Shown one piece after another: positions 21,089 to 62,715 of a DNA stretch of 64,000 bases. A model generated the notes under the pieces. That model worked only from the letters and a program-made list of their open reading frames with translations, was not told where the DNA came from and searched no databases. Position numbers and translations under genes: made by a program. The first letter of the stretch is position 1; each line of letters starts with the position of its first letter. Source of the DNA: Mytilus edulis (lineage: Eukaryota); NCBI RefSeq assembly GCF_963676685.1, contig NC_092345.1, positions 47,616,001 through 47,680,000 on the forward strand, given 5' to 3'.

Positions 21089-21209
21089 TTAGTCGCATTG
21101 TTTCTTTTCGAAGGCATATTTATAAGCAACTTCATTGTAGAATCCTTCCAAAGACTTTGTTCCCCTCAAACTAGAATCCCTTCTACCAAAGGCTTGTCGT
21201 ATCTGCCAA
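21089..21209 (-). CDS. Last coding exon, cytoplasmic tail
   Basis: TTTCAG acceptor; [39 protein letters not shown]. Confidence 0.75.
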
Positions 21210-30200: not shown

Positions 30201-33200
30201 CATTCATAGGTACTTTTACGTAGTATAACACATGTGTGATTAACCCGACACAATGTACAGGTTAACGGCTCTAAAAAACACAGAAACAATATACATTCAG
30301 TTGTTATACGTAATCAAGCAACACATAAAAAAAAAACCAAGATTTTGAAACACATATCAATATCCGAACCATTCTTATGTATCAATAATTTCCTTTAAAA
30401 ATGCATCATGTATATTTCACTCTACTTTTTATTGCAACATAGACATACTCATTTCTTTTACAATTGTACACTGTTACCCACAATTTTGCAATGACGGTTT
30501 TTTAATCAATACATAGGAATAAAACAAATATTTTCATTTCTTGGTAAAAACCTTTTATGCTAGGTTTGACTTAAGCTGATCTAAATGAAGGTTGAAATAA
30601 GTTCAATTTAAACTATATTGAACATAAATTAACAAAAGGATAATGCGTAAATAGGACATAAACAAGAATGTGTCCACAGTACACGGATGCCCCACTCGCA
30701 CTATCATTTTCTATGTTTAGTGGACCGTGAAATTGGAATAAATTCTCTAATTTGGCATTAACATTAGAATGATCTTATCAAAGGGAACATGTATACTAAG
30801 TTTCAAGTTGATTGGACTTCAACTTCATCAAAAACCACCTTGACCAAAAACTTTAACCTGAAGCGGGACAGACGGACGAACAGACGGACAAACTAACACA
30901 CACATGCATACACAGTTTAGGGCCCTCTATTATGGAAATCAAAGAATTAAATCTTAGTCAAGAAAACATCTGTAATATTTCAAATTGTTCATCATTAAAA
31001 TGAGTGTTTTTTCAATTTTTAAATACATACGACATTCGGCCATTGGTATTATCTTTTCATCGCTGTAAAGTTAATCTAAGGATATCATTTCTACAACCGA
31101 ATAGTCTCAGTAAATAAATGCCACTGAATATAATTCCATACAAATCAGCGGTGTTAACAAATAGCAATACATACTTCCCAATCATGTTCAGTATATATTC
31201 AGTTAAATTTCAGTTTTATGCATTCCAAAACAGAGCTGTAAATGTTCGTATAGCATTTGTAAGTCATCTACATACCCTGATTTTTTGTTTGGTAGTTGAC
31301 AAAAGTTTCTCCTGTAACACCATATGACTTATCGAGTACAGTTATCTGTGTTATATTATTTGTTACACTGGCAGTCTCCATTATCAAACTGTCACTCAAA
31401 CTTTGGTTAAATACAACTATATACTGAACAACTGTACTACCAAACCTGCAAGTTAAAAAAAACGTTCGAGCAAAATTTACAGATTCGTTAGTTTTATAAT
31501 CTGATAAGAAATTTTAATATTATTTAAACTATCTTAAATACGTGTAATTCATATATACAGTCATTGCTTGACAGCTGCTGCTTGGTGTGACCAAAGACTC
31601 TGTCTCATTGGCACTCATACCACATCCTCTTATTTCTATATGTGTATGTTTAACAATTTGATAACAATATTTTCTACACGTAATTATGTGTTCTAATCAA
31701 TTGCATTGTATATAATATTCAGATAGAGATCACGTTAACATAGATAATTTGGAATGATTTTAAGTTAAAGCTGGTGCTCCTTATAATATTCAGGGTTATA
31801 ATTTAATCGGTTGGGTGTATTATTGCTCATAAATTCATTATTTTTTTTTTTCAAGCAATGTTATTCCTATAACCATGAAATTATGGAGGCAACAAGTTGT
31901 AAGCTCTCATGTTGGATCTTACAAAAGACACTTTCCTGTTTGCACGTGAGGTTTTTAACTTTCAAATCTATGAGCATTTTTAGAGTGGCAAAAATTATGC
32001 ATATAAAAACTAACGTAATGTTCTTTTTAAAAACCTCATGTGTAAATGTTCATACAAGTTGTTTTAATATTTTTAATTTTTTTTCAAGATTATACTTTGA
32101 TTGGATGATTGAATAATAGATCGATTGATGATTAATCAACACCTTGTCAGCACATCAAGGTTCTATCACATTGACAATTCCTTTTAGATTACAAAGTAAA
32201 TGATTACTTACGAAAAGCTGATTACAGTTAAGGATAAAAATCCAGGAATATTGCTGTATCTGAAATACAGCTGAAAAAAGAGAAACATTCTCCATTATAT
32301 CAGAAATTCATCAAACTCGGAGACTAAATATAAAACATTCGTATCTGGTATATCAGTACCAGAGAAAAACATGAACAACACTTGAATTTGTTTCAGAAGT
32401 GTTTTTTGAATTTTCATAGATACAAGAATACATGCTTAAAAGTTTTTTTCTTATGCAGATTTGGAAAGTCGTTACTGTGGTAATGTAATAATATCTTTTG
32501 AATTGATGTATTTTAATTCGCCTTGCTATTTTAGGCAAGTTACATGCTGTTAATAAATCGCAACTGGGGGTTGAATTCAAATACTGTTTGTACATTAGCA
32601 CATTCCTACAAGATTGCTACCCAATAGTGAAATCTGCCTCATGCTACATAAATGAGATATTAAACTGTGTGCCACAATGTGTTATTGAAGTACAAAAGTC
32701 AAAATATAGTTAAAGTCCATAAACTCCGATTAGGAATGGTCAAATCAAAATGACAGAACAATCTGGTCTTCTACACATGATGACACACAACCCTATTAAC
32801 TTTTCGAGCTTTCTTTCAATTTGTCTTAGGTGTTATTGTCACAATACTCCAAAATTTAGTTAAAGTCCAAAAACTTCCATAAAGAAGCTATTGTCACAAT
32901 AATCGAAAATATAAGTCCATAACTCTCTTAAAGGTGTTCGTGTTACAACAGTCCAAAATATAATCAAAGTCCGATAACTCCCATGAAAATGACTGGATCA
33001 AAACGACATGCAGTGTCATAAAGTCAACAACTCATGACATCAAACAGTCCTACAAAGAATGATAACTTTCTGTAAAACAGACTCAGAGAATTTCCGTCCA
33101 CATGGTTGAATTGGTACAATGTCAAAAGAAAATTAACCAAAGTCCTTTTAAACACCTGTAAAAATGGTCAAATAGATTAAATTGAGGATATATCACAAAA

Positions 33201-36200
33201 GATTATGACAAAAATAATCCTGCTTTTTTGTGTATGAGTTTCATAAAATTTTAAAATATAAAATATATATCAAAGTTTTATGTCAAACGGTCGTTCTGAA
33301 CTGATTTGTTTTGAACGGATGTATGTATGAAAAAAGACCACATACCTAGCAGCGCGAAGCGTGAGGAAGAAGGTCCACAAAGAGGTAATGCATTTTTTTA
33401 GTGCTTTCTTTTTTTTTCTTTTTTTTATAATTGATTTCTTTTTTTTATTTGCACATGAACATAATAATAAGTTATACACAATTTTTTTGTATAATTGTTA
33501 TATGAAATAGACAGGATATATATACTATTTTTGATAGACACAGCTGTAAGAGTTTGGTACATTGCAGAATATGATTGCAAGACAAAGGCTGTTTGGATAT
33601 AAAATGTATATACAATATATGTGGTGTCTGTTGCCTTTTTTGTGAACCATACTTGTAAATGTTCGTTGGCAATTGTTCGGTTTCAGCTGTTTAGGGACGG
33701 GATTTGCTTCAATGTGTTGAAGACCATTTGGTGGCGAGGGGTGTTTTATGCTTTTTTGTCGGGTTGTTGTTTCTTTGACCAATTCCTCGTGTCCATTCTA
33801 CATTTCCCGTTTCTAATTTTTAATTTTTAGAAACTTTTTACTGGACATTATCAAGCTACAAATTCCAGAACTTTTATTAAATAACTGAAATCTTTAAGGA
33901 CTTAGTCTGTAGAAGAATCTAACTTACTGCTACTTTAATATCAACTCGTGCATGTTTGAATTCATCTGTGGAGTGATCTGCCATTTCACTTGTGTATGGA
34001 AAATTTGTTGTCAAGTAAATCTCAACTGATATGAAAACAGCTACAAAAATATATAAATTTGATCAATTTTGATTCATTTGTAGTAAAGGCGGTTTTTTCT
34101 ATATAAAAAAAGAAAGCTTAGTACACTGAGTGAGTTTTTTGTCCTGCCAAATAAGATATGAGACAAGTTTTCAGAAACCTATTAAAACAGAATTGTTAAA
34201 GGCTAGCATAGTCATCTTGTGAGGCAACTCCCATGCAAACAATATACATGATGACTTTTCATCGTTTATAATAATAACCAGCTTGTACCAAGAAGGAAGC
34301 CTTGCAAATTTTGCTACATACAAAGTGATTTTCACAAAGTAGGCGTCTTCTTTATAATAGATGGGTTGCAAGCATTTACCTGAGCATGTCTGATTGTCAT
34401 GTATACTGAGTTTATAATTTTCTGGACAATAGCAGACAGGTTCACTGTTCTCTAGTACACAGCCATAGCTACAGTTGATATTGTTATTTGCACATGGGTC
34501 ATAATCTGAAGTATAACAAAACGTATTTACAGTTTTATATTATTAATGTAGACAAACGCCTGCATCTATTAAATTCATCAATGCAGCAAAGACAAATATA
34601 TATATTAAATCGAATTATACGCATATGAAAATTAACAAGTCCATACATGAGTCTCTGACGTGCATTATTTATTATTTGAAAATTTATGAAATAAACTTAT
34701 AGTAGCTAGCTTCTATGCTTATAGTTTTGATTGGACCTGTATCCATCTAAATGAGGTCAAAGTAAGATTAACCATACATACCAGAAGGAAACGATCATTC
34801 CAAACATTCTTTGTACCAAATGTTTATAGAATTTAAGCTGCTGACTTGATATTTCAATCAACTATTTGAGAAACATGCAAAAACATACTACCTAGACACT
34901 TAGCATAATACCATGAACGTGAGATCAAGGTCAGACTAACCTACAAGACCGACATGTACATCTTTTAATTGTTGTATACACTACGTATAGTTGACTCATT
35001 ATCATCAACCGAGAGATGAAAAAAAATATGCAAAAATAGCATTAACTAATTATAAATTAATATTGAACATTGAACCATGAACGCTGAAAATGAGGTTAAG
35101 GCAAGATAAACCTGTCAGGGATACATGTACATATAACAATCATATATTTATCAAATATAATCGTTTACTGCTAAAACTATCTGAAAAAAAACAAAGTATG
35201 AAGCATCCAGGATTATTTCAGAAATTTAAAGGTTAATAGAAATTGTTTTACGGCCACAACTGCTTGATTATCAGTCACGTCATTCATTCTTAGTCTTTTA
35301 TTGCAGTCAAAAATGAATCAATAGACAAAAACAAATCGATTCTTCAACAGTATCTAAAAAATCCACTTTTCATGAAATTTTATATTCCTTTTATTCGCAG
35401 GTATATTCACTTTTTATACCAATAAGTTGGCAGACATCTGACATATTCCAAACAGACATTTTGGAAATAAGACATCTTCGTGGGACTATGAGTTATAGAT
35501 TGTCTAGCTTCTCTATCTTGGAAATTGTAGCTCTTAACAACTTTATAACACTCTGCTGTCGCACAACTGTCAGGTCAAATTCAAGTAATGTTTTGACTTA
35601 GTGTCATTAAAATTGTGAGGATATCTGACTGAATAATATACAAAATACAAAATATGAATAAATTACCTCTGCTACAGCTACTTTGATCAGAGTTCAATAC
35701 AAAACCATCTCTACATGAACAGTTGAAACTCCCAATTGTGTCCACACATATCTGCTCACAGTTATTGATTAACAGTGTACACTCGTCAATGTCTGAAAGT
35801 AAATAAAAATGTAAATTCTTAATATTGAATTTTCGTTTTGACAACCGCATGAGGAGTAAATCAGACCACCAAATTAAAACATTATTAAAACTTACCCTTA
35901 TTGTCCACATTTTACACATAAACAGCCATTTTTTCCTTTAAAAATGCCCTGTACCAAGTCAGGAATATGGTCATTGTTATATTATAGTTCGTTTCTGTGT
36001 GTATTACATTATAACGTTGTGTCGTTTGTTTTCTCTTCTTTTTGAGTGTAAATTCACATTGCGATAAGACGTGTCACGGTACTTGTCTATCCCAAATTCA
36101 TGTATTTGGTTTTGATGTTATATATATATATGTTATATTTGTTATTCTCGTGGGATTTTGTCTATGTGTGTTACATTTTAGTGTTATGTCGTTGTTCTCC

Positions 36201-39200
36201 TCTTATATTTAATGCGTTTCCCTCGGTTTTAGTTTGTTATCCCGATTTTGTTTTTTGTCCATGGATTTATGAGTTTTGAACAGCGGTATACTACTGTTGC
36301 CTTTATTTTTTACTACAAAATGTGTATACAGTTCATCAAAATTTTAAATTATAAACAAATATACATGTAGCTTTTTATTCTTGTTGATCAAAATTATGTT
36401 TTTAGAAAGGATGTCTACTGGATTTACACAGCAATGGCATTTGAACACATGAAACAAATAAAAAAATATTTCAACAGAAATATGAAAAAAATAAAATATT
36501 GGCCTTGTGTCAATGAAACATTAACCAATTTAAATAAAATAGAAGGACATCTACATGTTTTGATATATATATTCGTGTTGCACTTATTGTTTATACAATG
36601 ACAAGGAAAAAGGGAGTAAGACAAAACATTTTAACTTGATAATATAAGATGAAAAGTTTAAAAATATAAAAGTTGAATTAAAAAGTAGATTGATATCATT
36701 GAAAGAGAAACAAAATATATTTGCTTTTTTTTCTTCAATTAAATTTTATATTCAAATGTATGAAAAAGTAACATGTTTATAATTTTCTGACATGGTTAAG
36801 ATTGACATTGTTTCCAAAGTATGCAACTATTTATGTTGGTTCGATACTTTGTAACAATCATATTATACTACAGTAACCGTACAAGTGTATGTCGTAGTTG
36901 GTGGTATATTTCTGGTATTTCAATGTTTTCATTTCGTTATTCATGAACATTTTTTAGTTTATTAGAAGAAAATAACAAGACAATATCATTCCTTCCGTTT
37001 CTTCTTGATAACTGCTTCATATCAAAAGTTGTGAATCAACATTTTATAACTCTTACTTATACATGTTGTGTTCCCTGTCAACTCAAAACCATCCTCACAA
37101 GAACACAGATAACCTCCAGCAGTGTTGATACACCTCTGATTACAAGAATGTGTTTCTAAAACACACTCGTCTTCATCTGAAAAAATATTTTGTAGTATAG
37201 CCATTAAATTTTGTAAACAAAGTGTTCAGACTTCTTATTCATTCTTCATTTTCAGTTTCGATATTATTGCAGTTTAAAAGCTTATTAATTCACAGGTCTT
37301 GCAGAAATGGTCATAAATAATATAAGGCCCTGTAATGTCACCAACCCTACGCATTGACTGATATCCTCATTTATCGCATTTTTATGCACAAGAATTGAAA
37401 GGTTTTCTTAGAATGTAGATATAAACCAAGTCCGAGGACATAATTTGACTATGACTTAAAAAAATACTTTCTCAACTTTATTAAAGCAACATCATGAGAA
37501 GATTTTAGCAAAGACATAAAAAAAAATCAAACATTTTGTTTGAACTAACATAGAATGTATTTCAGTTTTAATAAAACATGTTTTACAATTAAAAGTCGAT
37601 CACCACAGGATAGTGTTTGAATATCAGTCAGGTTGACCGTTGTCAATATAAACTATGAAGCATTACCATGTTAAAAAGTCATGTTTTGCAAAATTACGCA
37701 ATTTTCTGATTTGTCTTTTTCATTTTATGTTTGTTTTATCAATATGTCTAACTAAAACCACACATATTTTTATTATGTGAATTATTAATTTGACACTTGG
37801 TGCATTTCCGCTAAAACGTAAACACCTTTTGATAAATAATTTGGTTGTTTCACAACTGATGACTGCAAATTTATGAACGTATTATTTACACCTGTTTTAG
37901 TTAATTAAATTTTGAATGGAAATGGGACGTGTGTCAAAAGGACAACAACCCGACCATAGAGCAGACACAAGCCGAAGGCCATCAATTGGCCTTCAATGTA
38001 TCGAGAAACTCCCGCACCCGCGAACGTCCTTCAGATGGCCCCTAACCAAATATGTATACTAGGTCAGTGATAATGGACGTCATACTAAACTGCGAATTAA
38101 ACACAAAAAAATAAAACTAAAAATGTCTTGGCTGCGATGTAAAAACAGAAAGACTGTTGACAGTACAGCCCTCATTTACTAAATCACATGATAGTTGGTA
38201 CTATAATATTTATGTTGTTAAACTGAAATAGAAATGAAACAATTTCTAATTATTTCAAAGTACTTTTTTTTACTTAGATGTGAGTCCGTTGACAAACAGG
38301 AAGATATAACATACGAAAGAAAGATTTGGTTCAGCTACATATACCAGTTTAGGTTTTAACATAAGTCAAGCGCGCGTCCAATTCTTTATAAACATAAAGT
38401 GATAATATATATAAAAAAATATATTAAAAATATTTGCTTTTAAAAAGGATATTCATAGAATGTTTTTCATTTACTATGTGTTACTATATATAGATTATGT
38501 ACTCTTAGAATACCCCTTGTGCGTCCTGTCCAGTAATTTTCTTTAAACACGACATTATCAACTACACACAAGGCAAGAAATACAGTATTGACAATAGATT
38601 AAAAAAAATTGAGCTATATTCAGTAAACCTTTTATAGTGGTATATTTTACTGATTCTGTAGATGTTATATGGTTGTCGTTTGTCTCTCCGGCAGGTATAG
38701 ATGATTCAGAGGTATATTCTGTAGTGGTTGTCGCCATGGATCGCAAATCTGATGTATACTTTTCAATATATATAGTACTTGTTTCACTCCCCACTGTCTC
38801 ACTAGTAGCTAATGACTCTGCAGAGTAGTAAATTGACAAACAAAAAGGTAAAACACAATAATACTATATGGTATACATTAGAAGTGAAGTGCAAAAATTC
38901 AAATTTGAATACGGACTGTTTAAAAATGGCTTAATAATCGTAAAAGTTGTATCTACTTATAGTAAACAGTTTTTCTTACCAACACGTACACTTTTATGCT
39001 AAAACAATGTGAACATTTATCATATAATAGCTTATTTGTAAAAAAAAAAATGGTTTAATTATGGCATACATTTATCAGAAACTGTTTAAATATTGGGTCA
39101 ATTCGATAAGAGACTTTTTTAAAACTACCAATTACCACAACTGTATAAAACTAAGCAGGATTATGGGTTGCTATGAAGGTTTAAACTACATTACAGAAAA

Positions 39201-42200
39201 TATCCTCTACATGATCAACGCACATTATTTTGTGTATTGTTGACATTTATTTTTCTTTTATTTACTAGCTTTTGTATACATTTTCAAGCTTGAAGTTGCA
39301 TATTTCTCATCCACAACATAACTATATATTATGTTGTATGTTTTAAACTGATCATATTTAATTTACAAAATTAATAATTCAAAGGCAATCTTTACATACC
39401 TTAATAACGGTTAAACTAAACCCTCTTTAATTTTTTACACATTGAACGTAAGGATTATAAGTATTACAGAGCTCACCACGCTAATGATAAGTGATACTAA
39501 ATCATTAAAATTTCGTTCAATATAAAACTTCTATGTAACAATGTTTGGAAATTTATTTCTAGTTCAGTCGTTATATTAAGTAAGGGATAGAAATTTCAAA
39601 AGTCGTTGAACTTTCTAAAGTCTTACCTTTTACAGTGGTATATTCCGCTGTAACAGGAGGTGTTGTATGTTTGTCATTTGTATGTACATAATGTACAGAT
39701 AAACCAGTCGTATCTTCTGTAGATATGATTGGCGTTACATTAGATTCTGGTGAATTCATTTCATGAGAACTGGTACTTGTTTCACTTTCCACTGTCTCTC
39801 TAGCAGCTGATGACTCGGCAGCAATATTAGTATATTCAGTTATATATGAAGTCAATGGTGATACTGAACTTGGTGTAGTGTCTGTAGATGATACTGAAGA
39901 AGTTCCATAGTCAGTTACAGTTATAGTGATATTTGTCATAGATGACTTTGATGGGATGCCATGATCTACTATTATAACCTTAAATTCATACACAGTCGTT
40001 GAATTCAAAAGAACTTTCGTTTTTATACTTCCAATGGTCTCATCTATTGCAAAAACTGGTTCAATATCTTCATCAACTATCTGAAATGACATTTGGTCGT
40101 GATCAATGTCATGTCCTGATAGTGTTATAATAATTGATCCAATCGATACATCGAATGGCACGGTCTGTGAGTAACCAGTCATGTTGAATATGGGGGCATA
40201 CATATTCCGTGGTCCAAAAGTGATATCATACGTAACTTCCACACCCTCCTCAGTTGTTTCATTTGAGGGAATTAAATCAAATATATGGAGAAAAAACTTA
40301 TCAAGAATATGTGTTGTCTGCCATACATTCTTTTCAATCATTAGTTTCCTATTTAAACTTGATTTACATTGTAGTAAATTTTGATTATCAACAGGGTTTG
40401 AACTTGTGATGTTATTTTCCATTCTAGTGTACGTCCAGGTTGATGCGTTTGCTGTTACCTTGATATGTACCACTGTATAGATTTTGTTTTGTGATCGCAC
40501 GTACGAGCTAGTGTATAGTTGAGTTATATTTCCTATATAAACATCATATACATCTGATCCATTCTGACTGTTATAAAGTTTATCTGGCATGGCATTACTA
40601 TCCACAATGTCATTCACCAAAAAATCGTCAAAGTCATTAATTTCATTTTCTGTATTTATTCTTACTAAGTGAACAAGTTCATGATATCCAAGTTCATCAA
40701 ATAATGAAAGTTGGGGATCTCCAAGGGGGTTGATGTTTTCAAAGGTAGCAGTATAGTTGTAAAATGTTCCTTTAAGAGTTGACGTCAAGAGCCAAGTGGC
40801 AGTTTTTGTTTCAAAGGAATGAATGTCCCCGAAATCAACTACAAGTGACGGAGTAATTTGATCGTTTCCAAGTTTTGCACCTAAAATCGTAAATGTTATT
40901 ATTAAACCTTTTTCATTTTCAATGATTTCTGGCTGAGCAGATGAAATGCGGAGAGCCTGGGCTGTGCCAAACCCATCATTCATTACAGACACTGCTAAAC
41001 TAAATGGAATAATTGGCTCAATAGCTGCTGTTAATGGATCATCTCCTCTTACATACTTTTCGTGGAAATAATGCACCACCAGACTAGGATTAGGTTTCAC
41101 AGTTATGATGTCTGGAAGCAAAGGAACAGAAAAGTTTGAACCACCAACACTGTAGGATAACTGACCTCCAACATTATACAATGTATCCTCTTGTGGAGCT
41201 GCTGTAGAATAAGGTATCATTAACCATTCAGCTGACCCTGAAAAATCTTTTCCAAGGGTTCCCTCTCCGTCTACACCAGATATTCCTATTAATGACGGTT
41301 TACCTGAAAATACATTCGTCTGCTATATTGAAAAATGATATAAAAAAAAAAACCCAAAAAATCTCTTATAAGCCTATGTCGCTCACCTAGGTAGAAGTTT
41401 AATTTTGAAAATAACCATCCTTTAACATTAAAGAAAAAAATACAATTAATGACTTAAACCTGGTTAAAGTTTAATTTTTATAGTTTTCAAAATAATAAAC
41501 AGACACGCAAACAAACAAAATAAAAAATCTCCACTCTTGACTTTTAAGTTGTCACATGGTGGCAATCATACCTCAACTTCGTATTCTTATATTGGTCTCA
41601 TATAGACAGGAAGCAGATAACAATATTGTGAACATTTCAGGAACTGTCATATTTTCTCTATATATATATATCAGTTATTAGACAGACAATATTTTATTCC
41701 TATTTTCCAATGTGAGTCACATTCGCTATGGCGGTAGGAAAGGTTTCATGGCTCATTTCTATACTGAAGAAATGTACCCTTAAGATGATAGTACCTAAGT
41801 TTACATCAACTTGGCCCTTTAAGTTTCAGAGGAGATTTTTGGAAGCAATAAATAGATGACTATACCAGACATCGATAGACTCAAAGTGACGAGAATAGTG
41901 TACTTGACCCTAAATGTCTTGCAAGCTAAAAAGAATAAAAGATTCATTTGCAGCACGCCTGTTGCCGTTTTAGTTCGTAATGTCATACCAGAAGCTATAA
42001 AACAACAAAGGCGAGTATTGCAATAGTCATAAATAAGTCACACAAACTTCCAAAAATTGGTTAAAGCGTATTTCAGTTATTGTCAAGAGTGAGACGATGG
42101 ACGAACGGTCAGACGGTCTGACAACAGTATTGTTTGTATTGGATACCTAAGCTTCATAGAATTCCGTACAAACAACGGTACATTGTCGGCTCATCTGCAT

Positions 42201-45200
42201 GATCCACCTAAGAATTGTCCATTAGATTGACTAAAATTCTGTCCGCAGTGAAAGAAGGCCTTCAGAAATACTGTGAAACTGTTTACTTGCGTAGTTGCAT
42301 TAACCATATGTGGATTCTAAACAATTCTAAAGAACTTCGAGATAATGTTAAATCTTGGTCTTTTTCTGAAATCAATTATTAGTTCTATTTAAACCTTTGA
42401 TTTTCCAATCCTGTATACCACCATTCCCCATGAGAAATTGAAAAATCGCCTGAAAGAAATAATCCACAATGCCTTTCAACATAAAAATGGTAACATACGC
42501 TATAAATTTACTACTTTGAATGTCGTAAGGCATATTTTGTTAAAAGTGAACAAAAGGGTAAAACATGCTACACAGTATTACGTAATATGTTATTAGTGTG
42601 CTGAAGTTTCTAATCGACAACATATTTGTTGAATTTGGAGGTATACTTTTTCAAAAAATTGTCGGCATTCTTATGGGAACGAACTGTGCGTCTCTCCTTG
42701 TCAACCTCTTCTTAATTCATATGAATCGGAGTTCCTTCAGACACTTGTCAAAAACAAGAAGATCAAAGAAGCCAAATTATTCAATTTCACTTTCAGATAT
42801 ATTGATGATGTGTTTTCCATTAACAATCCGAACTTTTCTGACAATGTTCCATTAATATATCACCAAGAAGTAGAAATTAATGAAACAACAGACACGGCTT
42901 CATCCGCCTTATTTTAAAACTTATATCCAGAATTTGACATAGACAGTCATCTCAGTACCAGAATCAACTAGATATCATTGAGATGGGAGCCATCTCTGTG
43001 GGCCCCGCTGTGAATAATGTGCATTAAAAAATTGTATCTTTACCATAGGACATGGGTTTGTCAACTGAAATCAAAGTTTTTGACCTTGACCTTTGACCTA
43101 GGAAGTTGTCAATAAATTATGACACACCCTTTGGTGTTGGTTTATAAACATGTCAAGTATAAACTTTGAAATGATAACGGTTCTCAAGATATAGAGCGGA
43201 CACGATCTTTACCATAGGACATGGGGTTGTCAAATGAAACCAAAGTTTTTGACCTTGACCTTTGATCTAGGAAGTTGCACATAAATTATGACACACCCTT
43301 TGGTGTTGGTTTATAAACATGTCAAGTATAAACTTTGAAATGATAACGGTTTTCAAGATATAGAGCGGACACGATCTTTACCATAGGAGATGGGGTTGTC
43401 AACTGAAACCAAAGTTTTTGACCCTTGAACTTTGCCCTAGGCAGTCGTTCATAAATTATGACACACCCACTGGTGTTGGTTCATATACATGTCAAGTATA
43501 AACTTTGAAATCATAACGGTTCTCAAGATATAGAGCGGACACGATCTTCACCACAGGACACAGGGTTGTCAACTGAAACCAAAGTTTTTTTACCTTGACC
43601 TTTGACCTAGGAAGTTGTACATACATCATGACATGCCCTCTGGTGGTGGTTAATACACATGTAAAGTATAAAGTATGAAATCATAATGGTTCTCTAGATA
43701 TGGAGCGGACACAAAGTTAAAGTGTTATGGACGGACGGACGGATGGATGAATGGACGGACGGACGGATGGATGAATGGACGGACGGACGCACGGACAGAC
43801 TGATCACTATAGGGTGACCCGCCTAAAGGCGGGGCCCTCGTGACAAACGAGACGATTTTATCTTCAAATTATAAATTTGTCCCACCTTAGTAACAATATA
43901 CCAACTTCATCTGCATATGGGATATATATTTCCCAGCTTATTCGATATTCAAGAGCTTGCAGCTACTAATCAGACGTTGTAAAACGTCACCAGAGTCTGA
44001 GCAGAAAGTTGATGAATCGTCTCATCCCTTTTAAAAAAAAAGTTCATCGGTAGGTACCAAGACTTTGTTGATAAATATTCCGTATCAACTTCACAAATAA
44101 TGCATGATGGTCTTGATGCATAGATTCTGCGTACTGACGCAGTTTATCATCTTCACTACGTGTTAAATTGTTCTTTTATTTGCCTTTGTTCATTTATTAA
44201 TATTACTTTTACTGTTTGATCTGTTTATGTTATATCCATTTGACGTGGCTCTGTACTATTGCATCGGTCAATGTGTTTGTATTATCTTTCATTTTTGTTG
44301 TTGTGTTTTGTATATGCGACCTTTTGTGTTTCTTTGGTTTTTACAACGTGACTCTGTACTTTTAAAGATCTCGTCATTATGTTATTGTTCTATTATATGT
44401 CATTATGTTATTGTTTTATTATAAATATCATAATACTTTGAACGACAATCGATAAAATTATTTTATTCGCGTAGTGGTATTACCCATATATGGATTCTTG
44501 AAAATTCTAAAGATCTTCTTGATAATTTTTAATCTCGGTCTGTTTCTGAAAATATTTCTAACTTAACTTTTGATTTTTTAACCCTGCATACCACCATCCC
44601 CAATGTGAAATTATAAATGTTTTGAATATACATTAAACGACAAAATTTCTTCATATGTGACGTTTACATTTTCTGACGCCAAACACGCGAAACAAAGAAT
44701 GTGTTTTTTAATTTGATAGATGCTTTTTTTGCTTTTTTGTAAATATTTGTTTGTTTTGCGATTGTTACACAGAGGTAACTGCGGTATGTCTGCTTTGTTC
44801 ACACATCGTTGAAAATATTACGGAAACATCAGAAATACCGAGCTCAATTTCTCTATTTAAAATCATTGAGTTATAATTCTTCCAACAATAGCTTATGATT
44901 TAATATGAAGTGTTTATCTGTTTTAACCACTGTTAATAACAAAGTCCATGTTTAACAATCAGAAACTCGATTTTTACATTAAAGAATTTAACAATAGTTG
45001 ATAAGAGTGGACGTGCGCATTACAATAAGGTATTCTAAAATGTTAACATGAAAGTATCATATACGTTCGAAATAAATTTTAACTCATGTGACCTTAATAC
45101 GATAGAAATGCAAGACTCACAATCTTTTTATTCATTAATTCATTAAATGTAGTTGGCTGTAGTCAACGTACATTGTCAATCTGATTGAAAATGCAGGGAA

Positions 45201-48200
45201 AGTGAATGGTAACAAGAAGTAATTGAAACAGGATGCTGTTACGAAGTCTCCCAAACAAAGCTCCCATAACTTGCAATTCATATGGTCCCATGTTCATTTG
45301 ATTTGATGTTTTGTCCCATACAAGAATATATATTGCTTACTGGTGGGGATCTCCACCATTTACAAGTATTCAAACAGGAGGGGGTGGTGGTGACCCCCAG
45401 GGACTTTACCTACATTTCATTTGATTTGTTTTATTGTCCCATACAAGAATATATATGGTTTAGGGGTGGGGATGTTGACCATTAACAAGTTTTCAAACAA
45501 GAGTGGGGTGGGGTGACTCCCTAGGGACTTCCCTTTTATTTCATTTTATTTGTTTTATTGTCCCCTACAAGAATATATATGGTTTAAGGGTGGGGATGTT
45601 GACCGTTTACAAGTTTTCAAACAAGAGGGGGTGGGATGACCCCCTCAGGACTTCCCTTTTATCTCATTTTATTTGTTTTATTGTCCCCTACAATAATATA
45701 TATATGGTTTAGGGGTGGGGATCTGGACCATTTACAAGATAATAGTACATTCTCAAATTAAACGGGGTGGGGGTGACCCCCAGGAACTTCCATTTAATTT
45801 CATTTGATTAGTTTTATTGTCCCTTACAAGAATATATATAGTTAAGGGTGGGGATGTTGACCGTTTACAAGTTTTCAAACAAGAGGGGGTGGGGTGACCC
45901 CCTAGGGACTTTAATTTTATTTCTTTTCATTTGTTTTATTGTCCCCTACAAGAATATATATGGTTTAGGGGTGGGGATCTGGACCGTTTACAGGATAATA
46001 GCACATTCTAAAATTGAAAGGGGTGGGGATGACCCCCGGGGACTTCCATTGAATTTCATTTGATTTGTTTTATCGTCCCATTCAAGAATATATATGGTTA
46101 AGGGGTGGGGATCTGGACCGTTTACAAGATAATAGTACATTCTCAAATTGAACGGGGTGGGGTTGACCCCCAGGAACTTTTATTTAATTTCATTTGATTA
46201 GTTTTATTGTCCCAAACAAGAATATATATGGTTAAGGGGTGGGGATCTGGACCGTTTACAAGTTAAAAGCATATTCTCGAATTGAAGGGGGTAAGGATGA
46301 CCCCCAGGGACTCCCCCTATATTTCATGTGATTTATTTTATTGTCCTTTAATCATTTCTGAAGACTGCATGTATCTATCACTTACAGTTTTCAAGTTATA
46401 TTTATTTGAAAATTTTAGAAAATAAAATCCCATAGGGTTCTTTAGTAAACCCCTCCCTTCTCTTTGCCCCCCAGAATACCCCTTAATAGACCCCAATGCA
46501 CAAATGAACGATTGATGGCTCACCTAGACATTTTATGAAACCCTAAGTAAATCTGACAAGTAGTTTTGGAGAAATGCTGCGGACAATTTCATTTTTAAAG
46601 TGGCGGAAGAAGAAGAGGAAGAAGAGGAAGAATAACTAGATTTGTAATTGCTAGCAATAACAGATGGCACCCTTCCCCCATTGCCAGGGTAACAGCAGCC
46701 ATTTTTAAAATTTCTTAGTCAAAGAGTGCATCTACAGTTGCAAATTAACATTTTTTTAAAGTTTCATAAATTTTGGAGCTTTTTGAAATTTCTGACATTT
46801 TTGCAGTTTCCATGGTAACGGCGGCCATTTTGAAAATTCCGAAGTCAAACTGTAAATCAGCACATGCCAGTTACCATTCCTGTGAAGTTTTTTCCACTTT
46901 GGAACACTTCGATGTTTTTCGCATTTTTGCTGTTTCCATGGTAACGGTGGCCATCTTGACCATTCCAAAGTCAGAGGGACAACTTTGGTGGTCAACATTA
47001 TACCATAGTTCCATCAACTTTGGTCCATTCTATTCTGAGAACTGCTCCGGACAAAAATAGTGGAAGAAAAATAATAAAAAAAAGAAAAAAAAGAAACGTA
47101 GAATAACAATATGTCATCCCAACTCCGTTGAGGGTGCCATAATAAAAATAATAAGAACTGAGCAAAAACAATAAGTCTCCAAACTTTGTTTGGGAGACTT
47201 AACAAGTACAAGCTTATTACACAGACCCAGTAGACAGCGGAATATGATCAACTAATTAACTGGAGGATGGTGATTGGAGTCATTATAAAAACTTATTGTA
47301 ATGCAGATGAGAACTCTTCTAAGACGATATCGATGACATTTCACATAAAAATATCATGTTCGAGGGAAAGCAGAAATTTTCCTGATTCAACATTAGTCCA
47401 TACCTCAAAACGTATACAAAATGTGTACATATACACAGAAATGGTTAAGTTGAACTAAGTTTTAACCATGATTTTACTATAACAATTCTCCAAATACGCC
47501 AGATATAATCATCCAAATATGAGGGGCAAGAGAATAACAACAGATTTTCGCACATGTATTAAAGCATAACTAAGTTAAAATAATCTGCTGCCATGATGTT
47601 CACCTATAGTTGTTCCTTCCTTCTACGAGACATACCAGAAAATTACTATCGGTATGTTGTCGAGTCATTGGAAGGAACCATTAACTCATATTAAAGTGAG
47701 GCTGTTGTGTCTGTTTTCTCTTCACAAATCAACTCTTTATTTACTTATTTTAACAACTAATTTTGTCCTTTAATAACGCCTAATGTAGAATAATCGTTGA
47801 AACAAAGTATATGATTAAAAGTGAATTAAATGTATTGCTTGTTTAATGTTCAGGTACAATAATGTCATGTACATTAAGGGGAAGAAACTAAAACTAATCC
47901 ATTCAATATATATGTTCTGTCATGTGGGTCCTGGAACTGTCACTGGGCAACAATGGAATTTTGGAATCCCTAATCCTGCAGGTATCGATTCAAGAAAGTA
48001 TGTTTGTCTTACATGATATGTTGAGCTTTAGTCGTTCGTAAATAAAAACTTGTATGAAAACAATTAAGGATGTTTGCTCCTCCATTTTTTGATTTTTTGC
48101 CAGATTTGCGGATCTTCCGGTTTTATCCATGTATTGTCTTTACAAAAATTTGCCCACTAGCCCCTACTTTTCTTTTAATAATTTTATTACATAAAGCTTG

Positions 48201-51200
48201 AAAATCCATATTTCAAAATTTTATAAAATTCTTGTTAATTTTTCATAATTTTTGAAACAGATAAGGTGCCAATGTTAAATATATGAAAAATCTTAAGAGA
48301 TTTATTTCCCGCCAAATTTTCAATGGCTTATATTTCGAAAACGAGCACACGGACCCTCCATTTTTTTCATATTTTAAAGTTTCTTTATTTATATACTATC
48401 AATCCATAACAGTCTTTTAAAAAGCTTGTTACTTTTTAACAGAGTAGCGAACATCCTTAACAGCTAACTCGTGCTAGTCTAATTTTTTACCTATTGAAAA
48501 CGTATCCTTTGCGGACTCTCCATTTCCAAAAGTTTTTGTAATTCTTATCTCCACTTTGATATTCTTCAATGCAGAAGTTTCTCCATTTTCCATTTCAAGT
48601 CTAGCATTAAAGGCATCTCGTGTTAGAACTAAGTCCTGAACAATTCTAACTCTGACTTTTGCACAAACGGAATCACTAGTACTACTACCACTCTGTAAAC
48701 ACATTAAAAAATAGGGATATTACAAAAGAGACTTATGTAAATGTGTGACTATAGCTGACACTTCTGGATATACGTTTTCTTAAAGCTTTATGCTTATTGC
48801 ATGTTAATTCATTTCACACTAAAGAGAAACTATCCTGTAAAGTTAATTTGAACGATTTAATAAAAAATCAGTAATAATGTGTTTTTGTACATAGACAATA
48901 ATAGTGCATTGACTTGACATATCAACGATATAAGGATGAGGCTTAGAAACGGGAAAATGCGAGGCTGTGCCGAGCATTTTCCCCGTTTCGGGCCGAATCC
49001 TTATATCGTTGATATGTCAAGTCAATGCACTATTATTGTCTTTATACTGCAATCTAAAAAAAAACATTTTCAATTGTTGTTTATTGTGTTAATGTTATTT
49101 TTTTTATTTAAATATTGGGAAAAATCCCCCTTTAAAAAGGCCTCATATCACACAGACGGAGAAATATAAAACCCGATGAAATGTACATCATTACCGCAAT
49201 CAATGGTGAACGAATTCGTTGCAGACTAAAATATCAACAATAAACATAAATCATAATGATTTATAGGTTGCAAACAAAAAAATATTAAAAAGTGAAATAT
49301 GTTTTCCCGAAAATTGCAAAAAAAAAACAAGTTTGAGTCGTTAAACGCATCGTTGTTTACATTGAAAACAAGAACAGGTTGAAGAGGTCGTATGAATAAT
49401 TAAACATAATTTCACCAATTTCTATTTAAATATTCATGAGGAAAAGTGATATCAGTTCAGTGACTGTATATTGCATAGAAATATACGGTCAACGCATTTT
49501 GACTGCTCAAATAGAACGAGTGCAGTATAAATTGAAATAAATATATTCAGTGTTGCAGAAAGTTGAAAAACGTACTTCATTTTTAATCAAGAAAATATTA
49601 ATTCTGAAACGTGTATGTTGATAGCTTTGTTTTTATGATTTTGTTCAGTTTTCTAAAAATATAATCATTGATATCACATATAACAGGTCTGAGGTTGAAC
49701 ATGATACAATGTCACTCTATGTCTCATTGTCCCTTCTGTATTGCAAAAAATGCTCACAATCAAACTGGAATGGAGTTCCTGCTGTTGAAGTATATTGCAG
49801 CACTTTTTAGCTAATTTGCCAATTTCCAACACAATGATATGCACATCTACATATTATGCACTATATATGCTAGTTTTCGGCGGCCTCCTTCTTAACGTTT
49901 GAGGTTTTGAATTTATAAAACTATTTCTCATTTATAGCTTACCTGACCTGAAACTACTGGACCAAATTTAACCAAACTTGGCCACAATTATCACTAGGGT
50001 ACATGTATCTAGTTGGAAGGATGTGTCCAATGACCCCTCCTGCCAACAAACATGACCGACATGGCTAAAAATAGCACAGAGGGGTGAAATATGGTTTGGC
50101 CTATACATGTATGTCTGAAACTAAAGCATTTAGAGCAAATCGGACATGGGATAAAAGATTTGATCAGGTTAACATCTATCTGCCCGTCAATTTTCAGACG
50201 AATCCTAAAAAACGTTGTTTTGTTGCTGCCCCTGATGTGGTAATTTTAAGGAAATTTTGAAGTCTTTGGTTATTATCTTAAATATTATTATAGATAGAGA
50301 TAAACTGTAAGCAGCAATAATGTTCAGCAAAGTAAGATCTTCAAATAAGTCAACATCACTTAAATTGTCAGTCAACCCGTTAAGGAGTAATTGCCCTTCA
50401 TAGTTAATCAGGTGAGCGACACAGGATTTTGAGAGCCTCTAGTTCTATTTTTCAACTATATTCATTCAAAATTACAAAATGCTTATACCAGAGTTTCTTG
50501 TTCGGCTGTTTTGTAGGTTTCTGTTGCATGGTCATACTCATCAAATATTGAATTAAATCCCTTTGTCTTAGCGTTGTTATGGTCATCAATATATTGTTGA
50601 ACTCCTGGATCCAGTGTTTGAAAATTTATTACATCAGCAGTATCAGCCAATGTGTTTAATGTCCCATCGTTCCATGCTGTTGCTGAAATGCATAACACAA
50701 TGTACCAATAACATCTGCATTCTCTGGTTTTTAAAAATAATATTGTTTGCTGACTTGTAATCTTGGAAAATGTTACAACATGTCAGTCAATTCAATGTCA
50801 TAACTTAAATATATGACTGTATGCTAGTCTTTCGAATTATTTATTTTATTATGGTTGATTTGGTACTTTGTTTGGTTATATGAATTCCAGTGAAAGTCAT
50901 GCATCCTCACCAGGAACGATGGATTATGCAATCGTCCTGCAGATACATGTACATGATGTATTGACCTGTTACTAGTATTAATCAATAGTTGAAGAAGTAG
51001 ATAGAGTATGAACGAAAAAATAACTGGTATATTCTGTTTGTTATGTATTCAATGAGATAGTCCAACTATCTAATAATTCTAAAAAGAGCTAGGCTCTTAA
51101 AAGTTTTACAATCCTATAAGAGTTGACTGTGAGCCAAAATAAGACCTACTGCAGAAAATCCGTCAGAGAACAATTGGATCTCCATGTTATCAGTATGCTA

Positions 51201-54200
51201 CAGCAGTTGTTTGACATTTTGTTTTAGTATATATTGTATACTTTTGTCACCAATAAAACTGACCACAATAAAAATAATGATTAAATGTTGGCTCAATCAA
51301 TCAATTACTATAATACGATGATTTTACATTTAATTACTGTTATAAAGATATGATAAAATTACAAGCAGCAAATCTTTAACGTAAGCAAGGTAACAAAATG
51401 CACTCGCAAAACAAAATCTAACACTTAGTTCAAACTTCCTTAATAATGTTTTTTCATGAGAAATTAAAAGTTAGCTTTGAATAAACACAGCAGCAGAAGA
51501 AAATAAACTTATTGTAATGGAACCATTCATATTGCAAAACATCAAATACCCAAATAGGCAGGTTGAAAAATGGAGAAAAGCGACAGTTCCTAAAATTCCT
51601 TCTTATATTGTGAGCAAGGCATAATAAAAGAGAAATAAGGTACCTGTGTTGTTCCATCTTTCTAAGAATTTATGCAATGTAACCTTCTGTGTTTCGTCGT
51701 TAATAGCACTAAGTACTTTGCTCAACTCTTCTGGTGACAGCTGAATTCCTAATGGACTTTCATCAGATATAACTGGTTTAAATGCTCGATACCATGACGT
51801 ATCTACATCATACCTATTAATTAAACAAATGATGTTCAATCTGGACAAATAAACGTTTTGAAAAATCAAATTAAAGTCAAAACAGACTGCATTTGCTTAT
51901 TTCAGAGAGCTGTTTTAGCCTCATCAGAAATGTTAAAGCGACAGATAAGTAGACCAAATATGGAAGCTTTTTAATTCCAAAAGGTTTTAAAACATAAACA
52001 GAATATACCAAAGATATAATTTCGATTATGGGAGACAGACTTGGAAACTTTGAAACTTAACAAGTGTATGTAGTGGAGCAAAATCTTTTAAGCAATCTTT
52101 TCATTTTATAACTTATGATTACACCTTTGGTATTTATTATTCGATAGTTTGGCAGTATTTTGCAGAAAATAATATTCTTCATATATAAAGCATAAAAAGG
52201 ACAGGTTTATCAAAATAGAAATTAAAATATTGAAAATCAAATAAGGTTGTAAACTTTAAAAAGATTACAGAATCACTATCCATCACATCTACAGAACATA
52301 TCTACTGATCATTTCGAAATAAAAGATTGGAAAATTCTGCAGGCAAGAACAACCAGTTTTCGGTTACACTCTGTAAGATATGCCCTGCATGTACTGTTTA
52401 GTGACGTTAATAAACAAACCGTTTTGAACCAGATCAAAAGTTTTAACAATGTCTAGAATGGTAGCCCTTGTATATGTGGCTATTGCAAATTAAGACCAAT
52501 CTTAGATGACACGTCCTGAAGACGTTTTAATGGAGACTCAATAAAAAAAACAATCATGTTTAATCTTCGGAGTTTTATTTAAATAGATGCAGTAATGAAC
52601 AGAAACTATTTGTGAACACACAAACTATAAACATATGGGTCCCTCCATCAGCAAAGAGGTTAGTAGAACCTAATATTAAAATGTGATTTATGTGTTTCGG
52701 TTAAAACCTCTACAAAGCTTATCTTATATTAGTCCCCCCCCCCAAAAAAAAAGCATTTCAAGACGTCATAATTGTTTGAACTAATGTTATTTTAAGTCAT
52801 GTCTACTGACTGTAAGTAAAACATCTAAAACTATGTATCTCTTTACTTTACAAGTTTTCATAAGATCTTTCTGGTATAAACACAAAAAATGAATAAGCTA
52901 TTAGTTTAATAAAATATAATTATTTTATTTACATGTTTTCATCATTAAAAATCTGCTGCATCAATGCAAAGAAATTATCAACAGGCTTGGCAGCATCTAA
53001 CAGATTGTTCACAACTTCACTGCTAACATCACGTCTTCGCCGTCCACCATTACCACAGTTGTAACTAACATCAACTAGACATCTGTCAAAATCATTTTGA
53101 TAAAAATGATGAAATTTGTTTATCATGTTTATATACCTTAGAATAAATTTTCATATTTCATGTTAAATGCACGATTTAATTAATTTAAACGACGGAGACA
53201 CTTTTATCTTTGTGTTCCATGCTTTACTGTAGATAAGAAAAGGTTACATCGAACAACCTCTGAATAAAATAACTAGTTAATAGAAATTTCAAATATTTGA
53301 ATTGTAAACAAGTCTAATACCCTGTTATGGAATTCAAAATAAAATCCATAAATAGGGGATGAGGCAGAATCTCCTACCGATTTTCCTCGCTCTCAGTGTA
53401 TACGTAGGGGTTCAATAGTGAATCGTGCGACTTAGAACCAAAGGAACATATGAATGGTCAGGAGGATGGACGCATACTTTTTTAATAGTGTTTATTTGAT
53501 ACAATATACTACCTAGTTACTGAGTACAGCACTGCGACAACCCCGCCAACACATCCAACAAATGTATCAATAAGTGCAAGACTAACATCCATTAATCTAT
53601 AGCTAATTCCTCCTCTATTTTCACCCTGTAAACAGATAAAAAGTATTCTTGGAAGATATTCAGACACAGATGAGTTAATAAAAATAAACTTACAATATTT
53701 CATATGTCAAACAAACTTATTTGGTGTTTTAAAATCAATTTATTAACCTTGCTAAGTATTTATCCCGGTTAATTAAGAAATCAATAATATGTAAACTTTC
53801 TTTTGAAATTAAATCAGATTGAAAGGTAATTTTGACAAGCTGGTGTATGATCAATTAACTTCCTGCATGCTTGAAATTCAAAATGCAAGCAAGTAAATGA
53901 TTACAAGAGAATAGTTCATATTTAAAATGATATGTTCTTAGATAAAACTTGAATGGTTCCACATGTAATGTCATTAGTGTTTGGCAGCCTTGTTTGGGAA
54001 GGTAAGCAGGCAGATATTTAGGGTCTTTCAAGTCTCCTTTGCAACACCAGGTATGCTTACATTTGCAAGATGTGCCACCAGCGCATGACACAACCTAATG
54101 GTGTGCATGTCGAAGTTGTTACAAACACACAATAGAATATTTAGATGGAATTTAATCAGACGCTAAAAAAATGGCTCTGAACAAAAATATGTCTGCGGAT

Positions 54201-62715: not shown

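Follow-up and report, generated by a model that had tools for sequence, protein, structure and literature searches.

A minus-strand Mytilus gene carries an unnamed extracellular unit of ~1,300 residues shared by animals and giant bacterial proteins

The stretch of Mytilus edulis DNA studied here, 64,000 nucleotides long and in the following simply called the window (genome G000, contig C2, positions 47616001-47680000), is AT-rich animal DNA with a GC content of 26-43% per 2-kb bin. Its minus strand holds part of a large gene for a predicted cell-surface protein, of which a unit of ~1,300 amino acids (aa) is shared with giant proteins of bacteria. An earlier note, drawn from the sequence alone, had placed this gene at 39627-62715, with a spliced model from 51813 to 40300. 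Both extents turned out to be too small. Collinear mapping of public homologues, for which 100 kb to the right of the window were fetched to place upstream exons, gave a minus-strand gene of ~135 kb and more than 4,000 codons, running from C2:47,772,461 to window position 21092. In detail, residues 1-1528 of P0169 (M. californianus LOC127729013) and 19-3035 of P0269 (M. galloprovincialis LOC143063814, 4057 aa) are collinear with the minus strand right of the window; this mapping extends from C2:47,772,461 to the window edge at 60-98% identity and continues inside at 62760-39574. P0002 (M. californianus LOC127730155, 1455 aa) maps exon by exon from 51818 to 21122 with 58-93% identity (tblastn), and the M. 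edulis protein P0160 shows 93% identity on the 1677-bp exon described below and 95-100% on many other exons (tblastn). The window exons were searched one by one, and public annotated homologues stand in for the full product.

Splicing was followed with contigs of four public sequencing runs placed on window 48400-53200. These contigs skip 48693-50488 (four runs), 50683-51643 (three runs) and 51811-52929 (two runs), and the skipped stretches end in CT..AC, which on the minus strand corresponds to GT..AG introns. One spliced contig of 3,242 nt carries 1,515 nt upstream of the exon at 53084-52930 and ~1 kb downstream. The runs were taken to contain transcripts because their contigs are spliced; their label 'RNA?' is itself a guess. 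The gene is a real, spliced and transcribed Mytilus gene. Bacterial similarity alone could suggest contamination or mis-assembly, but this explanation has a practically negligible probability: the unit lies within a 108-Mb contig, its GC content of 31-35% is like that of the surroundings, its canonical introns are confirmed by spliced contigs of the four runs, it is flanked in frame by cadherin, EGF and transmembrane (TM) exons, and orthologues occur in five Mytilus species.

The unit consists of three parts: block 1, with CARDB-, NEW3- and CarboxypepD_reg-like beta-sandwiches; a Cys/Gly-rich linker of ~190-240 aa; and block 2, ~530 aa with a helical domain and three packed beta-sandwiches, which is the best-conserved third. 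At least 12 introns interrupt it in the mussel. The exons of block 1 lie upstream of the window in the same orientation (loci L081-L083), and the linker landmarks lie inside. Following the minus strand in the direction of translation, the first exon in the window (62506..62760, ends putative) encodes the end of block 1, the dibasic site TRRKR (62643-62626), WDYVCG (62592-62575), YPGRPPLP and the start of a poly-Gly tract, and matches P0169 aa 1513-1598 with 57% identity (tblastn). The poly-Gly tract itself was located at 62487-62458 by motif position and by a linker alignment with animals and bacteria. A Cys-rich linker exon follows at 60409..60576 (PVTPLSCDC at 60543-60517; open frame; tblastn P0169 aa 1624-1719, 30%; ends putative). 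A probable linker exon with a hydrophobic Gly-rich helix, approximately bounded at 53512..53640 from its open frame and motif (IDTFVGC, 53571-53551), resembles '...GLIDTFFGCVAGF...' of P0169.

Exon 52930..53084 (joint 51810/52930 in two runs; tblastn P0169 84%) contains the last two linker cysteines and, at 53048-53028, the second dibasic site GGRRRR; block 2 begins in it. Counted on open frames, the linker of the window has 12 Cys, and one of its four exons has transcript-supported boundaries. Two exons then encode the helical domain: exon A at 51644..51810, ending in FLERWNNT (joints 50682/51644 and 51810/52930; tblastn; motif), and exon B at 50489..50682 with AWNDG (joints 48692/50489 and 50682/51644, each in at least three runs; tblastn). 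Exon C (48486..48692; joint 48692/50489 in four runs; motif; alignments) starts beta-sandwich 1 and holds a single nearly invariant Cys. The largest exon of the window lies in a stop-free minus-strand frame from 41322 to 39574 and encodes 64% of block 2. The earlier note had given it as 1677 bp at 39627-41303, which is exact at both splice sites (acceptor ttttcag/g at 41304/41303, donor AAAG/GTAAGA at 39627/39626). Its module part, with the rest of beta-sandwich 1 and beta-sandwiches 2 and 3, occupies 40300..41303 (phmmer, AlphaFold2 (AF2) models of homologues, acceptor). Behind it come a single extracellular cadherin (EC) repeat at 39904..40248 (residues 359-473 of the 583-aa frame) and a Ser/Thr-rich stalk at 39627..39903, with an S+T fraction of 0.40 over the last 95 aa. 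The exon encodes 11 N-x-S/T sequons.

The remaining exons are of a familiar animal kind. The EC repeat scores 30.5 bits in Pfam (PF00028, cut-off 28.8) and finds CELSR1 with E 3.4e-21 in a phmmer search of PDB; tandem EC repeats were not seen, the window and both orthologues, P0002 and P0160, having just one repeat each. A second Ser/Thr-rich exon at 38645..38824 is 100% identical to P0160 over 63 aa (tblastn). Three EGF exons lie within 34378..37180 (37180-37061, 35793-35668 and 34506-34378; Pfam and tblastn); two reach 39.0 and 42.8 bits as EGF_CA, and the third stays sub-threshold both as FXa_inhibition (28.0 bits, cut-off 33.4) and as EGF (16.6 bits, cut-off 21.5). Exons at 34041-33925, 32270-32211 and 31444-31277 (together 31277..34041) match the SEA region of the orthologue, with 74-93% identity to P0002 and 71-100% to P0160 (tblastn). 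Juxtamembrane exons, the TM exon (21845-21675), in which a hydrophobic stretch is followed by RSKKRK, and the cytoplasmic tail exon (21211-21092) fill 21092..30271 (tblastn P0002, P0160). The earlier claim of fused cadherin, EGF, SEA and TM domains was thus borne out for cadherin, EGF and TM, but SEA (PF01390) was called just in P0002 (aa 1068-1135, 31.7 bits against a cut-off of 26.4); Pfam scans of exons 31277-31444 and 26501-26668, each scanned alone, gave no SEA match. GAIN/GPS and 7tm_2 domains were not found in P0002 or in the mapped window exons.

As a whole, the predicted product begins with a signal peptide followed by discoidin, beta-helix, teneurin-type EGF and TIG domains; after the ~1,300-aa unit, a single cadherin repeat leads to a mucin-like stalk, three EGF domains and SEA, and the chain closes with one TM helix and a short tail. 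Public 3' ends differ: P0269 reads past the donor to a stop at 39574, and P0002 and P0160 splice on to the EGF/SEA/TM exons. If the donor 39627/39626 is left unused, 17 further codons lead to the stop at 39574-39572, as in P0269; this would be a secreted form without EGF, SEA and TM.

The gene is not alone. At least six loci in the mussel genome hold block 2, four on C2 within 0.5 Mb and two on C6, and in five paralogous loci the big exon is intact, its open frame measuring 583-685 aa, and the exon layout is common to them. One of these exons lies on the plus strand at C2:47612485-47613513, ~2.5 kb left of the window start; further paralogues are found at C2:47449354, C2:47946538-47947556 (two open frames), C6:10849291 and C6:11090897, forming a clustered small gene family.

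To what family block 2 belongs was approached by phmmer. The 341 aa encoded at 41322-40300, compared with 1.84 billion representative proteins, matched 2472 at E<=1e-3, 2183 at E<=1e-10 and 1597 at E<=1e-30, with a best E value for block 2 of 9.5e-271; local phmmer alignments cover P0002 positions ~6-540. With these numbers at E<=1e-3 and E<=1e-30, the motif series that the earlier note had singled out is not due to chance. Of its nine motif strings, seven match the minus-strand translation exactly as written: a string ending in ....TR.AF...LE.ENG (48668-48582), GVDG.G.L (41277-41254), W..IP...AAP (41226-41194), Y.VGG.LSY (41178-41152), GDDPLT..IEP..PFSL (41046-40996), a further string at 40941-40891, and WLL.S.L.G.F..Y.A.FE..N.LG.P.LSL (40794-40702). 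The other two are present with slightly different spacing. FLERWNNT (51668-51645) and AWNDG (50677-50663) lie on two exons, and the T-W spacing is three residues and not two, because of the transcript-defined junction phase and the orthologue P0002; in DFLVND..D...PD..Y, four residues precede PD, one off the string as written.

We observed in passing that an RGD tripeptide (VRGDDPLT, window 41049-41038) overlaps the conserved DDP.T motif. RGD is present in the four Mytilus and Haliotis proteins checked, in Haliotis P0009 upstream of the module and not at DDP.T; the proteins of sponge, shrimp and Saccoglossus lack it.

Domain libraries gave no name for these sequences. Pfam and NCBIfam returned on the module exons just the cadherin match plus chance-level matches, and the ESM Atlas just 'hypothetical' clusters and faint DUF11-like rows. 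Among PDB sequences, the single protein matched cadherins only and a 50-member profile matched none at E<=10. The family is, as had been proposed, uncharacterised: its named members are all 'uncharacterized', 'hypothetical' or named by similarity, and it has no Pfam or NCBIfam model. A literature search of main texts (supplementary files lay outside it) did not find the LOC identifiers of family members, DUF7949 or PF25820; bivalve horizontal transfer gave nothing relevant, and CARDB combined with horizontal gene transfer and metazoa gave teneurin papers only. Thus the domain family, its ~1,300-aa extent, its range over bacteria and animals, its single animal clade and its predicted animal dibasic sites are undescribed in the libraries and literature searched; the member proteins themselves are already in public predictions.

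The part shared with bacteria proved larger than the ~530-aa module first noticed, and amounts to the whole ~1,300 aa. Block 2 is 35-45% identical between animals and bacteria. Block 1 aligns over 500-600 aa with 24-29% identity and E values of 1e-21 to 1e-45 (BLASTP of Haliotis, Mytilus and Macrobrachium against bacterial frames), and the spacing of block 1, a gap of ~240 aa and block 2 matches between animal proteins and ten bacterial open reading frames (ORFs). Also the linker aligns motif by motif, with Y-D-Y-x-C-G, the poly-Gly tract, C-D-P-C and spaced Cys in hydrophobic Gly-rich helices. The sandwich domains of block 1 are faint in the mussel; in bacteria, CARDB, NEW3 and CarboxypepD_reg score above or near the Pfam cut-offs. 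In the case of CARDB (PF07705, cut-off 22.7), the mussel block 1 exon (L082:4014-4721) gave 18.3 bits and P0169 13.5, and the bacterial counterparts 43.4 and 52.9.

Bacterial members were collected by scanning one genome per GTDB species with the pattern [ASG]QP[EKQ]I[IV][ED]N[ED], which gave at least 600 matches, with 568 confirmed. Among the best 80 of the at least 568 confirmed loci, 38 belong to Verrucomicrobiota, 15 to Cyanobacteriota, 12 to Planctomycetota, four to Thermodesulfobacteriota, two to Armatimonadota and one each to Methylomirabilota, Actinomycetota and Myxococcota; six have titles without a phylum. Sharing with large CARDB/Calx-beta proteins had been proposed for cyanobacteria, planctomycetes and Bacteroidetes, which was right for the first two groups, but no Bacteroidota locus is among these 80. 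Twelve titles are not marked as metagenome-assembled genomes, including Calothrix PCC 7716 (complete genome), Calothrix NIES-4105, Anabaenopsis elenkinii (chromosome), Nostoc flagelliforme, Limisphaera and Aquisphaera insulae. The bacterial open frames with the unit are 1,745-5,969 aa long, one copy per genome in five of five genomes checked, and combine it with Calx-beta arrays, CARDB, subtilase, GDSL lipase, dockerin and Big_5. Upstream of two cyanobacterial unit genes there are only further pieces of the same giant gene. Counting the centre genomes, the unit was present in three of 151 sampled Cyanobacteriota genomes and in five of 151 Verrucomicrobiota genomes.

In Calothrix sp. PCC 7716 (L050), a DDE transposase ORF on the opposite strand at 1689-2894 stands between an ORF with five Calx-beta domains and the unit ORF, as if an insertion sequence had split the giant gene of this strain. 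In Nostoc flagelliforme (L023, 791-5923 and 5968-12981) and Anabaenopsis (L047, 33-4583 and 4465-12639) the giant gene is read as two adjacent ORFs on the same strand, which may reflect a frameshift, an assembly error or a real split. The break in Nostoc immediately precedes block 2, the module occupying aa 30-547 of the second ORF, and is close to where animals have their second dibasic site.

On the animal side, holders are given as found among the matches listed (120-150 rows per list). They include bivalves (five Mytilus species, Mya, Dreissena, Ruditapes, Mercenaria, Tegillarca and Sinanodonta), gastropods (four Haliotis species and Gigantopelta), Lingula, Lamellibrachia, Helobdella and the shrimps Macrobrachium, Palaemon and Halocaridina. 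In the case of Saccoglossus, three copies of the unit sit in one 7,485-aa protein. The sponge Dysidea avara has it in an adhesion G-protein-coupled receptor (GPCR), P0330, with DUF7949, the unit at aa 88-1328, 10 Calx-beta domains, Ig, GAIN/GPS and 7tm_2; the Haliotis and sponge units align as a single 1,297-aa high-scoring segment pair with E 1.7e-180. A group of unnamed ~2,200-aa proteins is 43-76% identical to the sponge unit and full-length collinear with shrimp proteins at 35-38%. A bacterial assignment of this group, prompted by its Big_13 and CarboxypepD_reg labels, was dropped in view of these two matches. We also noted that the shrimp proteins P0015 and P0233 (~2,230 aa) begin with SHFRGA.IMM.P after the signal peptide. 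Just N-terminal of the unit, P0330, abalone P0009, mussel P0169 and zebra mussel P0163 have a sub-threshold match to DUF7949, a stretch that perhaps belongs to the unit in its animal form.

A tree of 88 block 2 rows was calculated (IQ-TREE quick search, LG+C20+F+G4, unrooted). It separates 45 animal rows (33 named and 12 unnamed sponge-like) from 43 bacterial or metagenome rows by a branch of 0.44 with SH-aLRT 99. With FastTree, 340 rows were divided in the same way, though the branch between the two sides was weakly supported. Because all animal copies fall into one clade, the unit entered or left the animal lineage once, no later than the base of Metazoa, with subsequent loss in many lineages. 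The bacterial phyla are intermixed in the tree, which indicates that the unit moves between bacteria. The identity and the evolutionary placement of the unit can be stated with high confidence.

The earlier note had left it open whether the module was horizontally acquired or patchily retained, and had seen a sign of acquisition in the size of the 1677-bp exon, all other exons being given as 59-298 bp. Indeed, this one exon holds 64% of block 2, and the 35-45% identity to bacteria could also speak for a recent, mollusc-specific horizontal transfer. However, the other exons are not all small: upstream of the window they reach 708, 963, 1374 and 1521 bp, and the 1677-bp exon is therefore not exceptional in this gene. 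The unit is in addition split by its many introns, its five intact paralogues have a common exon layout, and six animal phyla hold it in one clade. Exon size is thus a weak sign, and a recent mollusc acquisition is very improbable; patchy retention in animals of a unit of ancient origin is the favoured half of the original alternative.

Taken together, the reading that we prefer, and hold to be somewhat probable, is that of an ancient metazoan family which goes back to one exchange between bacteria and animals no later than the base of Metazoa, disappeared from many lineages afterwards, and has a putatively convertase-processed head. Several points weigh against it. The tree is unrooted and from a quick search, and gives one exchange, not its direction. 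Its 12 unnamed rows were called animal by similarity alone (43-76% identity to the sponge protein), and the animal matches listed do not establish absence from vertebrates, insects, cnidarians or other eukaryotes. The proteins modelled below are a 60%-identical homologue and a Calothrix protein, neither being the mussel protein. As to the gene itself, a single 135-kb transcript is plausible from the collinear exons, but public models split the N-terminal and TM parts: none joins the N-terminal part with the EGF/SEA/TM part in one product, and the M. californianus annotation divides the region into two genes.

Regarding direction, a transfer from animals to bacteria would mean that a bacterium took up an ectodomain unit of an early animal, which later spread among bacterial phyla. 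The rarity of the unit in the sampled Cyanobacteriota and Verrucomicrobiota and the mixing of bacterial phyla in the tree fit such a course, and bacterial alpha-2-macroglobulins have been proposed as a metazoan-to-bacterium transfer. On the other hand, the block 1 sandwiches reach 43-53 bits in bacteria, above the Pfam cut-offs, and 18.3 bits in the mussel; the bacterial unit is embedded among other bacterial-type domains; at least eight bacterial phyla hold it; and the dibasic sites, confined to animals, look like an addition. Overall, we regard this direction as unlikely.

These dibasic sites flank the linker on either side. In the window they are TRRKR/S (62643-62626) and GGRRRR/D (53048-53028), and two such sites bracket the linker in sponge, shrimps, abalone, leech and mussels. 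Counting [KR]R within 55 residues before block 2, they were present in 25 of 26 rows of named animals, in all 12 unnamed animal-like rows and in 5 of 17 bacterial or metagenome rows. A stricter pattern (R-x-[KR]-R or three consecutive basic residues) was found in 21/26, 10/12 and 2/17 rows, respectively. By these residue patterns, the predicted furin-type dibasic sites are an animal-specific feature of the unit.

One could also regard the protein as a pro-protein, from which the Cys/Gly-rich hydrophobic piece of ~180 aa would be cut out as a membrane-active agent or signal, with the sandwich blocks serving as carrier or chaperone. Such a role would agree with the bracketing of the segment by two dibasic sites across the animals named above, and with its ~10 Cys in animals and its small-xxx-small hydrophobic stretches. 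However, bacteria have the segment without flanking dibasic sites, from which it follows that release is not ancestral. Blocks 1 and 2 are moreover far better conserved than the segment, which is just 30% identical between two mussel paralogues. The pro-protein function is, on this balance, unlikely.

Structural insight was sought from AF2 models. For P0007, an unnamed 792-aa animal-type homologue that is ~60% identical to the window exon, the model from 40 sequences has a mean predicted local distance difference test (pLDDT) of 78.7 and shows helices at 1-132, beta domains at 141-264, 270-371 and 398-552 and a cadherin domain at 556-652. The module alone (Calothrix, 435 aa, 50 sequences) reached a pLDDT of 91.3 and a predicted TM-score (pTM) of 0.84, and the three sandwiches are therefore predicted to pack as one body. 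Fold searches yielded no specific match: Foldseek and VIA on the 792-aa model gave matches dominated by its cadherin domain, and the module-only model gave generic Ig-like sandwiches, with Foldseek TM-scores <=0.28 that cover beta-sandwich 1 only. Over 435 residues of the first of 50 sequences from two domains of life, block 2 has 28 invariant and 55 nearly invariant columns. Such conservation speaks against a mere spacer and for an interaction that is specific and conserved. Among the conserved residues, the polar ones are concentrated in Asp-rich loops (DDP.T...E; D....DFLVND..D....PD), and these loops resemble Ca2+ sites of other adhesion domains.

Two enzymatic or covalent functions were considered and rejected. 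The first is a zinc metalloprotease, suggested by HELVH (HExxH) at 40683-40669, of which the first His, the Glu and the second His are kept in 44, 44 and 37 rows of a 50-row alignment. Zincins, however, carry HExxH in a helix, and HELVH is predicted to lie in a beta-strand in both AF2 models (398-410 in P0007, 292-304 in Calothrix). It is also missing from four of eight homologues checked (sponge, shrimp, P0169 and P0007), and Pfam gave no peptidase match, so that this function is extremely improbable. The second is a thioester protein, for which no A2M-family match and, in eight of eight proteins checked, no C[GA]EQ was found.

In animals the unit is combined with discoidin, SRCR, beta-helix, TIG, cadherin, Calx-beta, GAIN/7TM and SEA domains, in bacteria with Calx-beta, CARDB and enzymes. 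Because these partners, animal and bacterial, belong to extracellular recognition or adhesion, and because the Asp-rich loops are conserved, the unit is read as a Ca2+-stabilised recognition or adhesion head. In the mechanism that we tentatively propose, the unit would form a rigid extracellular head, the conserved Asp-rich loops of which probably bind Ca2+. In animals, proprotein convertases would probably cut at both conserved dibasic sites around the Cys/Gly linker. Cleavage would give a processed complex, held together non-covalently or by disulfides, on a mucin-like stalk that could be shed at SEA. Judged from sequence features, such a convertase-processed, Ca2+-stabilised ectodomain is possible rather than probable.

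A bolder version concerns both origin and function, and is rather doubtful. Here a bacterial surface machine of ~1,300 aa would have been captured once, before the split of sponges and bilaterians, and made into a convertase-processed head on a varied signalling chassis. Sponges would have joined it to seven-transmembrane (7TM) adhesion GPCRs and lophotrochozoans to single-pass cadherin/SEA receptors, and shrimps would secrete it in 2,200-aa proteins. The Cys/Gly piece, once cut out, would serve as a ligand, tethered or released, or would act on membranes. If true, animals would have in this unit a recognition module of a new and ancient class, the ligand of which is conserved.

Compared with known systems, the closest precedent is that of the teneurins. 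These are animal receptors with an ectodomain from bacterial YD/Tc-type proteins (PMC6425310; bioRxiv 10.1101/2025.11.11.687626). Like them, the mussel gene encodes a large animal surface protein around a multi-domain unit common to bacterial surface proteins and dating from near the base of animals, and the mollusc proteins have teneurin-type EGF N-terminal of the unit (EGF_TEN 57.6 bits in P0169, below the cut-off of 65). Unlike the type II teneurins, the mussel protein is type I, with a C-terminal TM helix, and its shared unit is made of beta-sandwiches and a small helical domain without a solved relative. YD shell, NHL propeller, FN-plug and Tox-GHH were not detected by Pfam on P0169, P0163 and P0009 or in the precomputed Pfam list of P0269. 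The gene is therefore not a member of the teneurin family, and teneurins are a precedent for its kind; the analogy that had been drawn holds for the origin, but not for any teneurin-defining feature.

The giant bacterial proteins ('tandem-95 repeat protein', 'CARDB domain-containing protein', S8 peptidase fusions) share the collinear unit and are likewise extracellular and repeat-rich; unlike the mussel protein, they are without dibasic sites and introns and have bacterial partner domains in place of cadherin, EGF, SEA and TM. FAT/CELSR cadherins and SEA mucin-like receptors resemble the C-terminal part, with an EC repeat closest to CELSR1, FAT4 and CDH23, EGF_CA, a Ser/Thr stalk, SEA (in the orthologue) and one TM helix, but the mussel protein has just one EC repeat, and the unannotated unit makes up most of its ectodomain. 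In the homologues of Lingula and Lamellibrachia the unit is followed by 9 EC repeats, and the annotation 'protocadherin Fat 4' that they carry rests on the cadherin part alone. In the case of ADGRV1-like adhesion GPCRs, the likeness lies in the sponge protein P0330, which alone places the whole unit before Calx-beta, Ig, GAIN/GPS and 7tm_2; the mussel gene lacks GAIN and 7TM and ends with just one TM helix. The comparison with complement C3 and alpha-2-macroglobulin concerns the mode of working only; A2M/TED domains and CGEQ were not found. Thus bacterial homologues are significant, and no match to a well-characterised pan-metazoan family was found, so that neither outcome named beforehand as speaking against the original interpretation occurred; as a whole, that interpretation is partly supported.

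The unit is one of the larger conserved extracellular regions that lack a name: it has 2472 representatives, but Pfam and NCBIfam do not model it, and none of its relatives has a solved structure. It connects giant proteins of Verrucomicrobiota, Cyanobacteriota and Planctomycetota with receptors of sponges, molluscs, annelids, brachiopods, crustaceans and hemichordates, and offers, after teneurins, a second testable example of how the architecture of bacterial surfaces was put to new use when animal cell-surface recognition arose. The two added dibasic sites, predicted to be processed, are a clear innovation of the animal copies. A domain definition would re-annotate thousands of 'hypothetical' giant proteins and correct names such as 'protocadherin Fat 4-like' and 'DMBT1', which rest on neighbouring domains. 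The importance would be smaller if the unit were a passive spacer.

Finally, the introns of the gene hold repeats of their own. At window 49849-50492, contigs of all four runs pile up with a summed word depth of thousands to tens of thousands; many short variant contigs occur there, and the stretch looks like a high-copy transcribed interspersed repeat. Intronic tandem arrays were found at 43036-43712 (170 bp, four copies), 45293-46346 (134 bp, 7.6 copies, or alternatively 390 bp, 2.3 copies), 58788-59287 (167 bp, three copies) and 61288-61539 (20 bp, 12.8 copies), the last in the bin 60001-62000, which has a GC skew of -0.29.

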